Origin: Octopus sinensis
Lineage: Eukaryota
Direction: 5' to 3'
Length of the DNA stretch: 64,000 nt
Assembly: GCF_006345805.1 (NCBI RefSeq)
Contig: NC_043004.1
Coordinates: 63,612,001-63,676,000 of the forward strand
The notes under the pieces were generated by a model. It was given only the letters and a program-made list of their open reading frames with translations. It had not been told where the DNA came from and did not search any database. A program made the translations under genes and the position numbers. This document shows, piece after piece, positions 788-61,751 of the stretch. How positions within the stretch are numbered: position 1 is the first letter of the stretch; each line of letters opens with the position of its first letter.

Positions 788-873
788 GTTTCTCTCACCC
801 ACAAGTTTCTATCGAACATAGTTACAATGAGTAAAGTGAGTAATCAGCTTGGGAGAAGACTAAAGAACAACAA
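788..873 (+). CDS. M13 peptidase copy 1, exon [28 protein letters not shown](K), phase 0-2
   Basis: tatcttttag acceptor, AA|gtaaga donor, open 86 nt; aligns with the copy-2 exon 39874-39965 (FLxN, KN) and splices in frame to 7499. Confidence 0.75.
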
Positions 874-934
874 GTAAGATTTTTTTAAAACTTTTATCGT
901 TAACATCATAATACACACAAACACACACATACTC

Positions 935-1226
935 ATATATATATATATATATATATATATATATATATATATATTTACATATATATATATATATACATAT
1001 GTATATATATATATATATATATATATATACATATGCATATATATATATATATATATATATATATATATATATATATATATATATATATATATATATATAT
1101 ATATCTATATATATATATATATATATATGCATATGTATATGTATATATGAATCTTGCAACACAAATACAGAAAATATATGTATATATATATGCATGTGTG
1201 TATATATGTATATATATACATATATA
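935..1226. repeat. (TA)n microsatellite. Similar tracts at 11005-11330, 12138-12310, 15130-15655, 32845-32890, 33770-33900, 35900-35960, 50365-50500, 53050-53110, 53800-53945, 60385-60535
   Basis: Direct reading; these explain the YIYI/ICIC/HTHT ORFs. Confidence 0.97.
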
Positions 1227-1605
1227 TAGTCAATTCGAGGATGACAGGTTCTCATTAGGGATTAAATCGAAACATTACAGTGGTTAATCACTATCACAAA
1301 GAGATAGTCTCGACAATATGTTAGGGATTATTATAGTAATACATATTGTTAATAAGGAAACAAAATAATGGAGAATTATGGATGTATAATTAATTACTTG
1401 TATGATATTATGAAGATGAAATTGTTTTTATAAAAAAATACAAATTTATTATAAATTAAAAAGTAATTTCAGATGCCAAATCTACATATATGTTTCGATT
1501 CATACCCCTAGGTAATTTGTGATTGGAAGCATTTACGTAGGGTCAAATATTAAGAATTGTCATTAGGGCTTTATGAGCTTATGCGACAAAGGGTATCATA
1601 TTTCT

Positions 1606-1837
1606 AGGCGGCGAGCTGGCAGAATCGTTAGCATGCCGGGCGAAATGCTTAGCGGTATTTCGTCTGCCGCTACGTTCTGAGTTCAAATTCCGTCAAGGTT
1701 GACTTTGCCTTTCATCCTTTCGGGGTCGATTAAATAAGTACCAGTTACGCACTGGGGTCAATATAGTCGACGTAATCCGTTTGACTGTCTTTGTTTGTCC
1801 TCTCTGTGTTTAGCCCCTTGTGGGTAATAAAGAAATA
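1606..1837 (+). mobile_element. tRNA-headed SINE, family A, with 14-bp TSD
   Basis: ggcggcgagctggcagaatcgttagc...gagttcaaattcc head; GGTATCATATTTCT duplicated at 1592-1605 and 1838-1851. Confidence 0.9.
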
Positions 1838-57535: not shown

Positions 57536-57601
57536 GTTAATGGAGAAAGAACAGCTGAAGAAAATATTGCTGATATTGGTGCTTTAAAGATAGCGTATGA
57601 G
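57536..57601 (+). CDS. M13 peptidase copy 2, exon VNGERTAEENIADIGALKIAYE, phase 0-0
   Basis: tattcag/gtatgt sites; ENIAD third zinc-ligand motif. Confidence 0.97.
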
Positions 57602-59639
57602 GTATGTATCTTGTTGAAGTATAATTGGAGGATTTATTTCGTATTCATTTTATATCTTAACCTAGCGCACGCACGCGCATTCATACAAACAGATATGTGG
57701 ATGAGGATATGCATACGTTACTTCAGTGCATGTTTCTATGCGCTAACTAGTGATTATTTCCCTTATATATTTCTGAATGTGTATACGAAGTAATGACTAA
57801 ACGTTGACGCTCTTTGAAATAGCGTGTTGAGGTTGATGCAATTATAGATTACGTTAGACCTATCAAGGTGCCATAAATGTTAAAGAGGGGCAAAGGAGTA
57901 TACCATCATAGCGGTTAGCTGTCCTTTTAGATATAAATGTTTTTTTGAAAATCAAAGAAAAAGAGGATGTATATGGACACCTGATTTGAAACCTCCAGCT
58001 TCTATTTCAAGTCTATAAATTCTTATTCCTACTAATAATAAGTAGAGCACCAAGTTTTGTCAATAAATGCTTACAGGAGAATCTTGGTAAACTGGAATTT
58101 TCAAAAAGAGAAATTGACTGGCTGATTCGTACATTCCAGGTCCAACCGGTGAATCGATCGGTAAAAATATGCAAGAGTTTTCTGAAGTTCCAAATGTGAA
58201 TTTATCTGTTAACTACATCCCAAAGATGGTGCCTTGTATCTATGTTGGAAACCGGCTCCCTCCTCAGTGGAAGATTTATAATAATTAAAAAAATAGATGA
58301 GATATACATGCATACATACATAAATACACACATGTAAAACTGTGTTTTACATATGCGTGTCTCGCGTAATGTGTTTTCTAGTATTAAGGGAGTTGATTTA
58401 TGGAATTTATATCATGCTCTCTTCTCACAGTTACTCATTCTTTCAACATCGAAAATGTTTTGTTGGGTTTGTGGGTCTTTTGTTCGGTTTTCTCAATTTC
58501 AATTGCAAATTAATCCGTTTGAAAAAAATCTCTAAACTAGTATAAGGATGTTATATAATTTGAAGCTTAAATTTCATATGCAAACATCTAAAACAGATTT
58601 TCTCTTATTTATAACTGTGTTGTGCAGATTTTGTGATTTAGGTGTTTCTTTTACTCATAAAATAGAATATAAGTCGTAACCACCGTATGGCTTGAAATAT
58701 TCTTTCTTTTTGATGATGATATATATTTCTTCTATACACTGGTGTTTTCGACATGTATTTTTCTTTATAAAATGAGTTTCAAATGTAAACCGCAGAGTAA
58801 CTGTGTAATGTTTAATTTATTTTCATGGAGTTTGAATATATATGATTTTAAAATGTCCAACTCTTCAACGTTGTTTTGTTTTACAATCTATAATTTTAAT
58901 AGTCTATACTATACAGTTTCCTAAATACATATCTATAAATATGGCATTTTGCTCAGGTACATTTGCCTTCTTTTGTATGAAATTTTTCCTATCATAAACA
59001 GAATGCATCTTTAACATGTGTGATATCCAGAAACCATATTGCAGTGTCAGAAAAATTTAGAATAGTTAATCTTATGCGCTTGCATGCCGGATTAATCTAA
59101 ATCCATCTGTATTTATAAAAGACGAACATGCATATCTTAAAGATATATAAAGTTCAAAGTCTAACATTTCGCTTCAGTCTTCTTGTAATTATGCACCAAT
59201 CCGTATAGCATAAAATGTTGCTTGATTTATTATCTCTTGCTTAATAGTAGTTCTGATCACCTCATGCTGTTTCGCATAGCTTAATTGTAATTCCTTAAAT
59301 TAGTGTTACTATCAGCATCTTCATGATACTTATGTTGCTTAGGGACTAGTAAAGCCTTCTACAACTGTAAGGTACTATCGAATGCTGAATTATATTCTGT
59401 TAATTTTTGAGGCACTTTTGGTATTAAAATTATACCAAATAATTTTTGAAGGAAAAGATGGTTACAATATCTTCACTATATGGCATTTACTTATGTGATT
59501 ATATGCATATTGAATTATAAAATTCCACGTGGAAACATGAATAACCGAAGACAAATGGATATATATTTAGATTAATTAAATTCAGTTGTTTAAATAGCTC
59601 TTATCATTGAATAAAAGATATAATTCCAATTTATACCAG

Positions 59640-59738
59640 GCTTATTTGCTATGGAAATCAGACCATCCTGATGCTAAGAAGACACTACCTATACTAAAAA
59701 TGACAGATTTACAGCTATTTTTCATGTCGTTTGCTCAG
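59640..59738 (+). CDS. M13 peptidase copy 2, exon AYLLWKSDHPDAKKTLPILKMTDLQLFFMSFAQ, phase 0-0
   Basis: tataccag/gtaagt sites; LPxL...QLFFxxFAQ motif. Confidence 0.97.
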
Positions 59739-61677
59739 GTAAGTCAATAATTGATTTAATGCTTTCAGACACTACCTATAAGTATAATAATCTCGCTGCA
59801 AAATTTTTTATAAGAGCAAGGTAAATGTTGGTGTAGCATCAACTAGTATATTATGATATATAGTAAACAACAATTGATATTCTTCTCTAGAAAAGAATCC
59901 ATACCGTTCTCGGCAATTGAAAACATGATTTAGTCTTCAAGAATGTTATGTCTTTTCAAAAATCTGAGACATTCGTAGAACGAATTAAACAGCCAATCAG
60001 GTTTTAGATTTGAAAATATAATTCGGAAACCTAAAACACTTTTGAGGTACTTATTTACATATTTGAAAACAAAATATAAACGATGAAAGATGTTTTAGAG
60101 ATGTTGACATGACATTTAGGTTTAGATTGTGAACATTCAAAACAGCAAATAAGAAATTCCAATTGACAGGCAAAGTACGTAACCTGAGCTGTCTAGATAA
60201 TCCAAACGAAAGAGAGAAATACAAATAAATATTCATCGCTCCTGGAATTTACGTAGTCGTTGAGGATCCTGTGATTTTTTGAGATCTATAGTTTTTCAAG
60301 TCAACATATTGAGCATAGTTTGACCCGTTAATTTAGAGTTTTATTTTGGGAAGGATTGTCCATTTAATGCCACAATTGGTTCTTTATATATATTATATAT
60401 ACATATATATATATATATATATATATATATATATATATATATATATATATATATATATATATATATATATACATACATATACATATATGTATATATGTAT
60501 ATATATATATATGTGTGTATATATATAAATATATACATCTACTACATATGTGGGAACTGCTCTCTGCGGATGTGTTTGTGGAGTTGATAGTTGTTTGCAA
60601 ACTTCTCCTACGCCGTTTCATCGATTTGGATGAAAGTTGACTCGTCAGTAGAACTCAAGACAGGAAATCTCATGGCATACTCAGATTGTTGAAAATATCG
60701 GTAATACGGTCCCGGGAAAGGATCCTTATATTTATATATAATAATTCAAGTCAATAGCAAAAGGATATAACCCTATCACCCCGCTTTTAACAGACACGGG
60801 AGAAAAAGCCATGTATTTTCCTATATCATTTGGGATAAATCAAATTGAGTAAGCTTATTAGTTTTGGGACTGTTAGCGATAGTTTCGCAATTTATCCCCT
60901 ATAAACAAGTAAACAGTACTTTCCTAAACAATAGATCCACTTCTTTCGGTTAGTGACTTATTCACGAATATAACAATACTAGCGCTGCTGAGGGTAATAT
61001 TCTCTGGGAACACACAAAAGACCTTTTCAGGGTTATTTACTTTGAATTGTTATTATGTCATATCTGATTAGCGTATTATGACGTAACATGCTTCACGATT
61101 TCAGTATAATATTATTGATATTTCCTCCTCTCCTCTATATACTCTGGGAACGTATTAAAGCCTTTTCGGAGCTACTTTATTTGAAATCTTACTACCGGGT
61201 AACTAATTTCATGTTATTACATAACTGACTTCACAATTTGGGTATTCATAACTTATTGGGAATTCCTAAATACAAGATCCTGTGTAAGAGAGTTCGGTAT
61301 TCTCTATAAATGCACAAAAATGTTTTAAGGTCTACATGTCTACATACTAAGTCAGATAGGATGTATATATACATACACACACACACTCACATATATTATA
61401 TATACCTATATATATATATATATATATGTGTCTGTCTGTGTGTGTGTGTGTGTGTGTGTGTGTGTGTGTGTGTGTATAGAGTATGCGTGTATGAGAGTTA
61501 TATTATTTGGGATTAATCATAAAGTTCAATATTTTCTTAATTGCATCATCGAAATGCAATGATAGTGTTTTCCGAACTAAGGTGTTAAACTCTAGTGTGT
61601 AGCTTAGATAAAGTATTTCTCTGTATCTCACTTGGTCATATATTTTTGGGTTGTCACAATTTATTTAATTCCTGCAG

Positions 61678-61751
61678 TCTTGGTGTTCTAATGTAAGCCC
61701 TAAGGAAAAATATTTGTTCGAGAATGCTGTACACTCTCCGATGGAGGCAAG
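61678..61751 (+). CDS. M13 peptidase copy 2, exon SWCSNVSPKEKYLFENAVHSPMEA(R), phase 0-2; terminal exon not in window
   Basis: cctgcag/gtaaat sites; WC and HSP-x3-R motifs. Confidence 0.95.

Follow-up and report, generated by a model that had tools for sequence, protein, structure and literature searches.

What kind of locus is represented by the peptidase-like exons that are strewn over 64,000 nt of Octopus sinensis chromosome C8 (C8:63,612,001-63,676,000, forward strand; this whole stretch is called the window below) is the question addressed here. An earlier note, made from the letters alone, had described them as a hidden tandem cluster of two divergent neprilysin-like genes. The assembly comprises 2.719 Gb in 13,516 contigs, with 107,269,306 bp in C8, and the window has a GC content of 34% and a single run of N (100 N at 23444-23543) standing between the two sets of exons. 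The reading preferred here, with a probability of roughly 0.7, is that the window cuts an array of neprilysin/ECE-type (MEROPS M13) genes, that its two copies, the left A-type copy A1 and the right B-type copy B4, are real extra loci of this array, and that the damage they carry is assembly error. The step from two copies to two real loci is the least secure one. Other loci on C8 are referred to as A2, B1, B2, B3 and C.

Exons were mapped by a padded search with the right-hand peptides, which led to two O. sinensis proteins, by tblastn of both proteins, and by reading the splice sites in the DNA. The two reference proteins are XP_036361321.1 (P0001, 'MMEL1 isoform X2', 763 aa) for the A type and XP_029639718.1 (P0002, 619 aa) for the B type. 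All 17 short plus-strand exons that the earlier note had spliced into M13 sequence were recovered within 0-3 nt of their proposed places, five of A type and 12 of B type. Five exon pairs indeed recur in the same order and on the same strand, with lengths of 59/59, 52/52 and 122/122 nt as claimed and with matching phases in the intact pairs (0->2, 2->1 and 1->2). The peptides quoted from ten places are present in stop-to-stop frames, including VNAVYNALSNS and IQAVYYVVNNS, ...PVALMKPPLF... and ...PIAMLQPPVF..., and HEILH twice. Three of the 17 exons are damaged (14822-14888, 22170-22291 and 26832-26964), and the other 14 are intact with canonical splice sites. In BLASTP of left-half against right-half open reading frames, dispersed repeats dominated the matches and only 2 of the 5 exon pairs came back, and the reference proteins were used instead; a regular-expression scan for motifs was useful for locating the ENIAD exon only.

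The last five preserved exons of A1 lie on the plus strand in the left 23 kb of the window, its earlier exons being upstream; the gene starts more than 37 kb before the window, with the first coding exons around C8:63574597-63574734. The exon at 788-873 (86 nt, phase 0->2) is intact, encodes 28 residues and a split (K), reads AG/GT at its borders and matches P0001 and P0118 at 100%. The intact exon at 7499-7557 (59 nt, phase 2->1) encodes TIVNQNDVNAVYNALSNSI and keeps the Asn of the 'NAYY' substrate-binding motif, and the intact exon at 8933-8984 (52 nt, phase 1->2) encodes IPVALMKPPLFIKGAP(M). The exon with the zinc motif HEILH, at 14822-14888 (67 nt), has, by alignment to the intact twin A2, its acceptor changed from AG to AT, its donor from GT to TT, and three 1-nt indels, one of which makes a TAA after 'GLGT'; the HEILH letters are present at 14831-14887. 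The exon at 22170-22291 retains its splice sites and shows four 1-nt indels and no substitution relative to A2, and it is still 122 nt long because the four indels sum to zero net length. A-type residues after ~652 are not encoded in the window. The twin A2 has four further exons spread across 35.5 kb 3' of the point that matches the gap edge, and mapping with the reference proteins did not find these four A2-type 3' exons in the window. The first coding exons of A1 (MAERKYSEV..., with a transmembrane segment ...KLRNANQRQ) are B-like and unlike those of its near-twin A2 (MPGTEPLNSSK..., ...KLLIANQRQ), which suggests exon shuffling or gene conversion among array members.

Past the gap, the B-type copy contributes 12 plus-strand exons, all 12 bordered by AG/GT. 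The first one present (24765-24879, 115 nt, DFINIAFLQILQEFYGMIPTIGMYLADSISNLGVARNY) equals residues 400-437 of XP_029639718.1. It is followed by exons at 26832-26964 (133 nt instead of the expected 132, an extra A in an A-run shifting the frame), 32916-33020 (105 nt), 39400-39477 (78 nt) and 39874-39965 (92 nt), the last being the counterpart of A1 exon 788-873. The exon at 45817-45875 (59 nt, NQVSDMDIQAVYYVVNNSI) has Gln instead of the 'NAYY' Asn; next come 47453-47504 (52 nt, IPIAMLQPPVFYKGAP) and 53130-53197 (68 nt), which encodes a 22-residue peptide with HExxH intact. The peptide of 55749-55870 (122 nt, ...SDKSYENYDDLK...) occurs, among the proteins compared, in XP_036361325.1 only. The exon at 57536-57601 (66 nt, VNGERTAEENIADIGALKIAYE) supplies the third zinc ligand Glu and the Asp of ExxxD; after 59640-59738 (99 nt), the penultimate exon at 61678-61751 (74 nt, ...AVHSPMEA(R)) supplies a His and an Arg that align to neprilysin H711 and R717. 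The thirteenth and last exon (...VQVPLMNSKDFAEAFNCEKGSNMNPYVKSEMWAK*) lies 1.1 kb past the window end, at C8:63677124-63677229 (window-equivalent 65124-65229). B-type residues 1-399 are not encoded in the window, and B-type 5' exons were located only in other C8 copies and on scaffold C9074. With the extra A of 26832-26964 removed, spliced B4 yields an open product of 388 aa, identical to P0002 at 220 of 220 shared residues. The copies can be told apart by peptides such as 'VVESSQKR' in A1, 'ENYDDLK' and 'MNSKDFAEAFNC' in B4, and 'IDKSYESYDELK' in B3.

Both types belong to peptidase family M13. Spliced B4 reached 163.2 bits on Peptidase_M13 (PF01431), for which the cut-off is 24.5 bits, well above anything that chance would give, so the family assignment of the earlier note withstood the profile check, and the A-type protein P0001 reached 157.7 bits. 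On Peptidase_M13_N (PF05649; cut-off 32 bits), P0001 scored 107.5 bits and P0002 105.1 bits, and the B4 portion in the window scored 36.4 bits at profile positions 296-378, the C-terminal end of the domain. Among solved structures, the best matches of spliced B4 were human ECE-1 (3dwb, E=9e-46) and neprilysin (~3e-34). In these alignments HEILH of B4 faces HELTH in ECE-1 and HEITH in neprilysin, EENIADIGA faces ENIADNGG and VHSPMEAR faces HSPxxFR; the corresponding A2 motifs are ENIADLGG and KHAPVEAR, the ENIAD exon of A1 being missing at the gap. B4 and A2 alike conserve the ExxxD Asp, the His/Arg pair near the C-terminus and the zinc ligands, namely both HEILH histidines and the ENIAD Glu. 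In neprilysin, H711 and R717 are the transition-state His and the substrate Arg, and the substrate-binding Asn of the NAYY motif is N542.

The octopus proteins share with human ECE-1 and neprilysin (MME; 1dmt and others) the two-domain PF05649 + PF01431 architecture, the alignable HExxH, ExxxD (ENIAD) and HSP..R motifs, a putative single N-terminal membrane span in the full-length proteins, and a gene built of many short exons with a last exon for about the final 35 residues. The last exon encodes 34-35 residues in octopus and the final 32 in human MME. In XP_029640079.1, the RefSeq protein of A1, the membrane span would be the hydrophobic N-terminal stretch ICIIGTVVMGGIILLSGIVVLGV, which is encoded upstream of the window and resembles a stretch in P0002. 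Unlike these enzymes, the octopus proteins are only ~25-30% identical to them, the stretch after HExxH is shortened compared with neprilysin (GFDxxG...WW), and the B type has Gln at the NAYY position (IQAVY, exon 45817-45875), where the A type retains Asn (VNAVY, exon 7499-7557). The C-terminal CxxW retains its Trp and lacks the Cys, the A type ending in KIKIW and the B type in KSEMWAK; CxxW is typical of mammalian M13 members and is no requirement in the Pfam or MEROPS definition. By homology, the intact versions would be type II membrane ectopeptidases that cleave small peptides, with both HEILH histidines and the ENIAD glutamate as predicted zinc ligands. In another octopus, Paroctopus digueti, unspecified 'Neprilysin-1' transcripts were reported from the digestive and anterior salivary glands, with no link to the genes described here (PMC12607849).

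The two types are distant from each other. They share 40% identity over 674 aa, and in a maximum-likelihood phylogeny (24 M13 proteins, bacterial outgroups) they are separated by ~1.24 substitutions/site, each with 100% support. The A, B and degenerate C proteins and the O. bimaculoides protein XP_052826014.1 form one clade (100/99) on a long stem, a fast-evolving and octopus-specific M13 group, and within it the O. sinensis B copies are 0.04-0.08 apart and at a comparable ~0.1 from the O. vulgaris orthologue. In an exhaustive search for relatives among 1.84 billion cluster representatives, only the B type exceeded 35% identity to the A type (37%), all others being at or below 35% and of partial length; other M13s are ~25-30% identical to the A/B clade. 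Because of the 40% identity, the ~1.24 substitutions/site and the octopus-only clade, an A/B split that is old, lineage-specific and not allelic is supported, in line with the claim of the earlier note. The nearest full-length relative outside sinensis and vulgaris, the O. bimaculoides 'neprilysin' XP_052826014.1, is also the best full-length relative of the A type (29% identity); it is sister to A/B/C on the tree, keeps VNAVY, HEMMH, ENIAD and HSP, and ends in 'KIEIW'.

The relation between the two halves of the window is set by the gap. The left side of the window, extended upstream by 40 kb, was aligned with the A2 locus (C8:63743001-63833000) and proved colinear with it over 61 kb, right up to the gap: window 23443, the final base of the left flank, pairs with A2 position 53088, an intronic site. 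From its first base, the right flank matches at 95% a B1 intron (C8:63201592-63202783, minus strand) that precedes the exon for residues 398-446. The gap is thus a join between a contig ending inside an A-type intron and a contig starting inside a B-type intron, and no small hole in continuous sequence; its two sides are neither continuous nor in frame. Missing at the gap are at least four A-type 3' exons and at least eight B-type 5' exons, and an intergenic stretch is hidden or wrongly skipped there together with at least 35 kb from the A-type 3' end and at least 15 kb from the B-type 5' end.

Six-frame genome searches with A-, B- and C-type proteins placed both halves in an array of at least seven M13 loci over ~0.8 Mb (C8:63.04-63.83 Mb). 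These are C (plus strand, 63.04-63.10 Mb, C8:63040180-63099630, XP_036361323.1), B1 (minus, 63.16-63.22 Mb), B2 (minus, 63.31-63.37 Mb), B3 (plus, 63.44-63.50 Mb), A1 (plus, 63.57-63.635 Mb, the left part of the window), B4 (plus, 63.636-63.677 Mb, the right part past the gap) and A2 (plus, 63.74-63.83 Mb), and one more B copy sits on C9074, an unplaced 108-kb scaffold. The two-gene cluster of the earlier note therefore stands as regards two types in tandem on one strand and falls short as regards extent, the scan of neighbouring DNA that it had proposed having turned up at least seven loci on C8 in addition to C9074. Near-identical twins exist for both window copies. B4 differs from B1 and C9074 by 0-6 mismatches/kb and from B3 by 24-40 mismatches/kb, and A1 differs from A2 by 3-9.5 mismatches/kb for the most part, with local values of up to 27/kb, a DNA identity of 93.7% in the 5' region and intron lengths that differ by kilobases.

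We lean toward taking the two window copies as real extra loci of a recently amplified array, because three near-identical B versions (B1, B4 and C9074) exceed the two haplotypes of one individual locus and because the first exons and the N-terminus of A1 differ clearly from those of A2. Several points weigh against this picture. The substitution divergence of A1-A2 and of B4-B1 (~0.3-1%) is compatible with two haplotypes of one locus, and only one O. vulgaris protein (729 aa) falls into the 90% B-type cluster, which may point to a smaller copy number in the sister species. One and the same loss of a single base (ACxTTAATT -> ACxTAATT), which makes a TAA after 'GLGT' in the HExxH exon, occurs in A1 (window ~14852) and in B1 (C8:63172984-63173385, minus strand), which is odd for random error; chance, a systematic error of the consensus at this site and a genuine recurrent change are all candidate causes. 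Sequence comparison does not by itself tell an assembly error from a true pseudogene or a haplotig. Enzymatic activity and membrane topology are predicted from homology only, in proteins of which one type has Gln for the NAYY Asn and both types lack the C-terminal CxxW Cys.

The recent layer of duplication may thus be real or may be assembly redundancy. A possible, though distinctly less probable, account is that the window fragments are haplotype or otherwise redundant contigs of A2 and of B1/C9074 that Hi-C scaffolding would have put close to their true locus and joined by 100 N. The allele-like divergence (3-9.5/kb for most of A1 vs A2, 0-6/kb for B4 vs B1/C9074) and the lone O. vulgaris member fit this account, as do the facts that both contigs break within a gene at one gap with error-rich ends and that an unplaced 108-kb scaffold carries another near-identical B copy; no heterozygosity figure for O. 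sinensis was found in the literature searched. Three near-identical B versions are nevertheless too many for two haplotypes of one locus, the 5' exons and N-terminus of A1 are markedly unlike those of A2, and the A1 and A2 introns differ in length by kilobases. The upstream neighbours of A1 and A2, namely B3 and B4, are 3-7% diverged, so the A1 and A2 flanks are not allelic. The balance of this evidence tilts toward real extra loci.

Another question is whether the three exon defects are decay or error. The left contig end (12000-23443) is rich in indels, with 15-27 indel events/kb relative to A2 compared with 0-6/kb elsewhere; of the events between 12 and 23.4 kb, 70-88% involve a single nucleotide and 45-71% fall in homopolymers. 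Mismatches between A1 and A2 do not climb along with the indels toward the gap, the damaged A1 exons differ from A2 almost solely by 1-nt indels, and the rate of 1-nt indels at the contig ends is ~10x background. On the other side, the first kb of B4 past the gap has ~15 indels/kb, which falls to 3-7 indels/kb at 24.5-30.5 kb and to 0-2 indels/kb beyond 30.5 kb. As the counts at 24.5-30.5 kb are near-equal relative to B1 and C9074 and similar relative to B3, these indels are likely private to B4, and the extra A of exon 26832-26964 lies inside this elevated zone. Since the indels are mostly 1 nt long, rich in homopolymers and confined to contig ends, the three defects are read as probable assembly errors, most likely uncorrected long-read errors at thinly covered contig ends and probably not biological decay.

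An unlikely alternative is that the copies are true gene relics, A1 a 3'-decayed pseudogene and B4 a 5'-truncated, frameshifted duplicate, both produced by unequal crossing-over. Partial copies are a common by-product of tandem arrays, stop codons, frameshifts and the loss of splice sites are seen in A1, B4 has one frameshift, and RefSeq built only a truncated 555-aa product for A1. Relics of this kind would be expected to gather proportionate substitutions under neutral decay, whereas the damage is found at contig ends only, consists nearly entirely of 1-nt indels, many homopolymeric, at ~10x background, and hits introns equally, as in uncorrected long reads; no damage is seen in the remaining 14 exons, whose splice sites are canonical. 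Assembly error in otherwise real gene copies is accordingly retained as the probable source of the damage.

The public annotation of the array can be followed copy by copy. The RefSeq models and O. vulgaris CAI9726473.1 represent the same genes or near-identical twins and contain the window exon peptides letter for letter. They carry such names as MMEL1 X1/X2 (XP_036361320.1/XP_036361321.1) and EEF1AKMT4-ECE2 readthrough-like (XP_029639718.1), and XP_029639640.1 is a further model. XP_036361321.1 and XP_036361320.1 come from A2, the intact twin, XP_029639718.1 comes from B1 on the minus strand, and CAI9726473.1 (Octopus vulgaris, 729 aa) is a full-length B-type orthologue. A1 corresponds to XP_029640079.1 ('neprilysin-11-like', 555 aa), in which exact 8-mers from C8:63572001-63635443 account for 521 of 555 residues; it ends in ...FIKGAPM, the model reading exon 8933-8984 on into the intronic ATG TGA. 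XP_029639718.1 stops at ...GLGT after 619 aa because B1 lost one T in the HExxH exon (ACGTTAATT -> ACGTAATT). The word 'hidden' in the earlier note thus does not hold, because RefSeq models already cover these exons: XP_029640079.1 the left gene, XP_036361325.1 the right 3' exons, and XP_029639718.1, by identity, the right 5' exons. No full-length B4 model was found among the RefSeq proteins compared.

XP_036361325.1 (P0271, 372 aa) joins 5' exons of B3 (C8:63.463-63.49 Mb) to 3' exons of B4 and spans ~170 kb, across A1 and the gap; among the proteins compared, its 3' peptides 'ENYDDLK' and 'MNSKDFAEAFNCEKG' match B4 of the window only. It could be cited for a single long gene with alternative exon sets, in which the right-hand exons are alternative 3' exons of an upstream gene, as it is B3-type up to the 45817-type exon and is the only compared protein that shares the B4 peptides of 55749-55870 and of the last exon. 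Such a gene is very improbable, since splicing would have to cross ~170 kb, all of A1 and an assembly gap, B4 has its own upstream run of exons with good splice sites, and with paralogues so nearly identical, RNA-seq reads are easily assigned to the wrong copy and models easily become chimeric. XP_036361325.1 is therefore probably a chimera of near-identical paralogues. The further proposal that a single gene uses the left and the right exons as alternatives was rejected, as they come from paralogues of 40% identity that each have a full-length counterpart elsewhere. Scarcely any credence is left for the literal version in which two complete, independent, divergent M13 genes stand side by side in 788-61751, for in spite of two paralogue types with the same strand, exon order and paired phases and lengths, the window lacks A-type residues after ~652 and B-type residues 1-399, the start of A1 lies more than 37 kb upstream and the end of B4 1.1 kb downstream, so that completeness of both genes is refuted; the gap stands between a 3'-truncated A1 and a 5'-truncated B4.

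Under the preferred reading, an array cut by the window and damaged by assembly, the genes are two half-genes of a well-known and already annotated enzyme family that lie on either side of a scaffold join, at a place where the assembly is prone to errors. M13 peptidases are well known and tandem expansions of them are common in invertebrates, and little new biology is offered by genes that already bear neprilysin/ECE-like RefSeq names. The stretch at C8:63.04-63.83 Mb calls for caution in assembly and annotation, given its indel-rich contig ends and a 100-N gap that joins two unrelated half-genes. RefSeq models here are fragmentary or chimeric because of the assembly, with A1 cut at 555 aa, B1 cut at 619 aa and XP_036361325.1 mixing B3 and B4, and these faults are relevant to M13 gene counts, phylogeny and expression work in cephalopods.

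Multiple tandem M13 paralogues, some of them catalytically degenerate, are likewise known as Drosophila Nep1-5 and relatives and as nematode nep genes, and the search of representatives returned fused multi-M13 models with up to nine domains from nematodes, insects and a tardigrade. The octopus A/B/C clade stands apart from these invertebrate expansions on the tree (100/99, long stem), so the octopus expansion arose independently. Neither the clade nor the array was described as such in the literature searched, but as gene-family expansions go they are ordinary. For work on cephalopod peptide signalling or digestive enzymes, the existence of a long-branched M13 clade that is confined to octopus and includes very recent copies offers a modest lead. 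It is conceivable, as a speculative extension, that this fast-evolving subfamily is still amplifying, with young duplicates at <1% divergence and mosaic 5' ends, and that it has perhaps taken on a new role, such as the tuning of peptide signals in the enlarged nervous system or service as a secreted enzyme of digestion or saliva.

Further observations concern other members of the family. At the left edge of the array, XP_036361323.1 of locus C has LIGCEIFRDF for HExxH and DIIADEFG for ENIADxGG and scores 93.5 bits on PF01431; with its zinc site degenerate, this paralogue is likely catalytically dead. In B2, the intron and exon for residues 398-446 occur twice, at C8:63339736-63347582 and 63351235-63358257 (both minus strand, ~10 kb apart), which may be either an internal partial duplication or two B2 genes, and the copy B2b shows 7-34 indels/kb. 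Other M13 exon clusters lie at C26:12.50-12.81, C12:47.44-47.66, C14:42.54-42.59 and C8:61.52 Mb, with higher Pfam scores than the array, so the genome holds several tandem M13 groups; whole-genome Pfam searches, which scored the best candidates only, returned the C26, C12 and C14 clusters and not the C8 array. Tandem peptide repeats encoded outside the window mark the cytoplasmic tails of both types, MPGTxPLxS / PLISFEMEKKE twice in P0001 and P0119 (A type) and NRVVAGEPGPLTV three times in P0002 (B type).

The remaining observations concern the window between the exons. Its end, 61900-64000 within the last intron of B4, has a GC content of 0.42, a strong C skew and long open frames. One open frame, at 63011-63517, contains 'GRYIDDC' and recalls a reverse transcriptase, and Pfam searches with this and the other six long window open frames outside the M13 exons gave no match at E<=0.01. 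A dispersed repeat of ~550 bp at 34940-35490 has copies of 92-95% identity on many chromosomes, two further repeat families were seen at ~24150-24350 (~200 bp) and ~30220-31500 (~1.26 kb), and SINE-like elements are common to 13.68-14.12, 32.2-32.7 and 52.2-52.5 kb. Directly 3' of exon 8933-8984, at 8985-9050, stands a (GTT)n run, and the introns contain long microsatellites of the (AT)n/(TA)n kind as well as an (ACT)n array, located at 935-1228, 11101-11327, 15104-15658, 21694-21908, 53801-53945 and 60385-60535.

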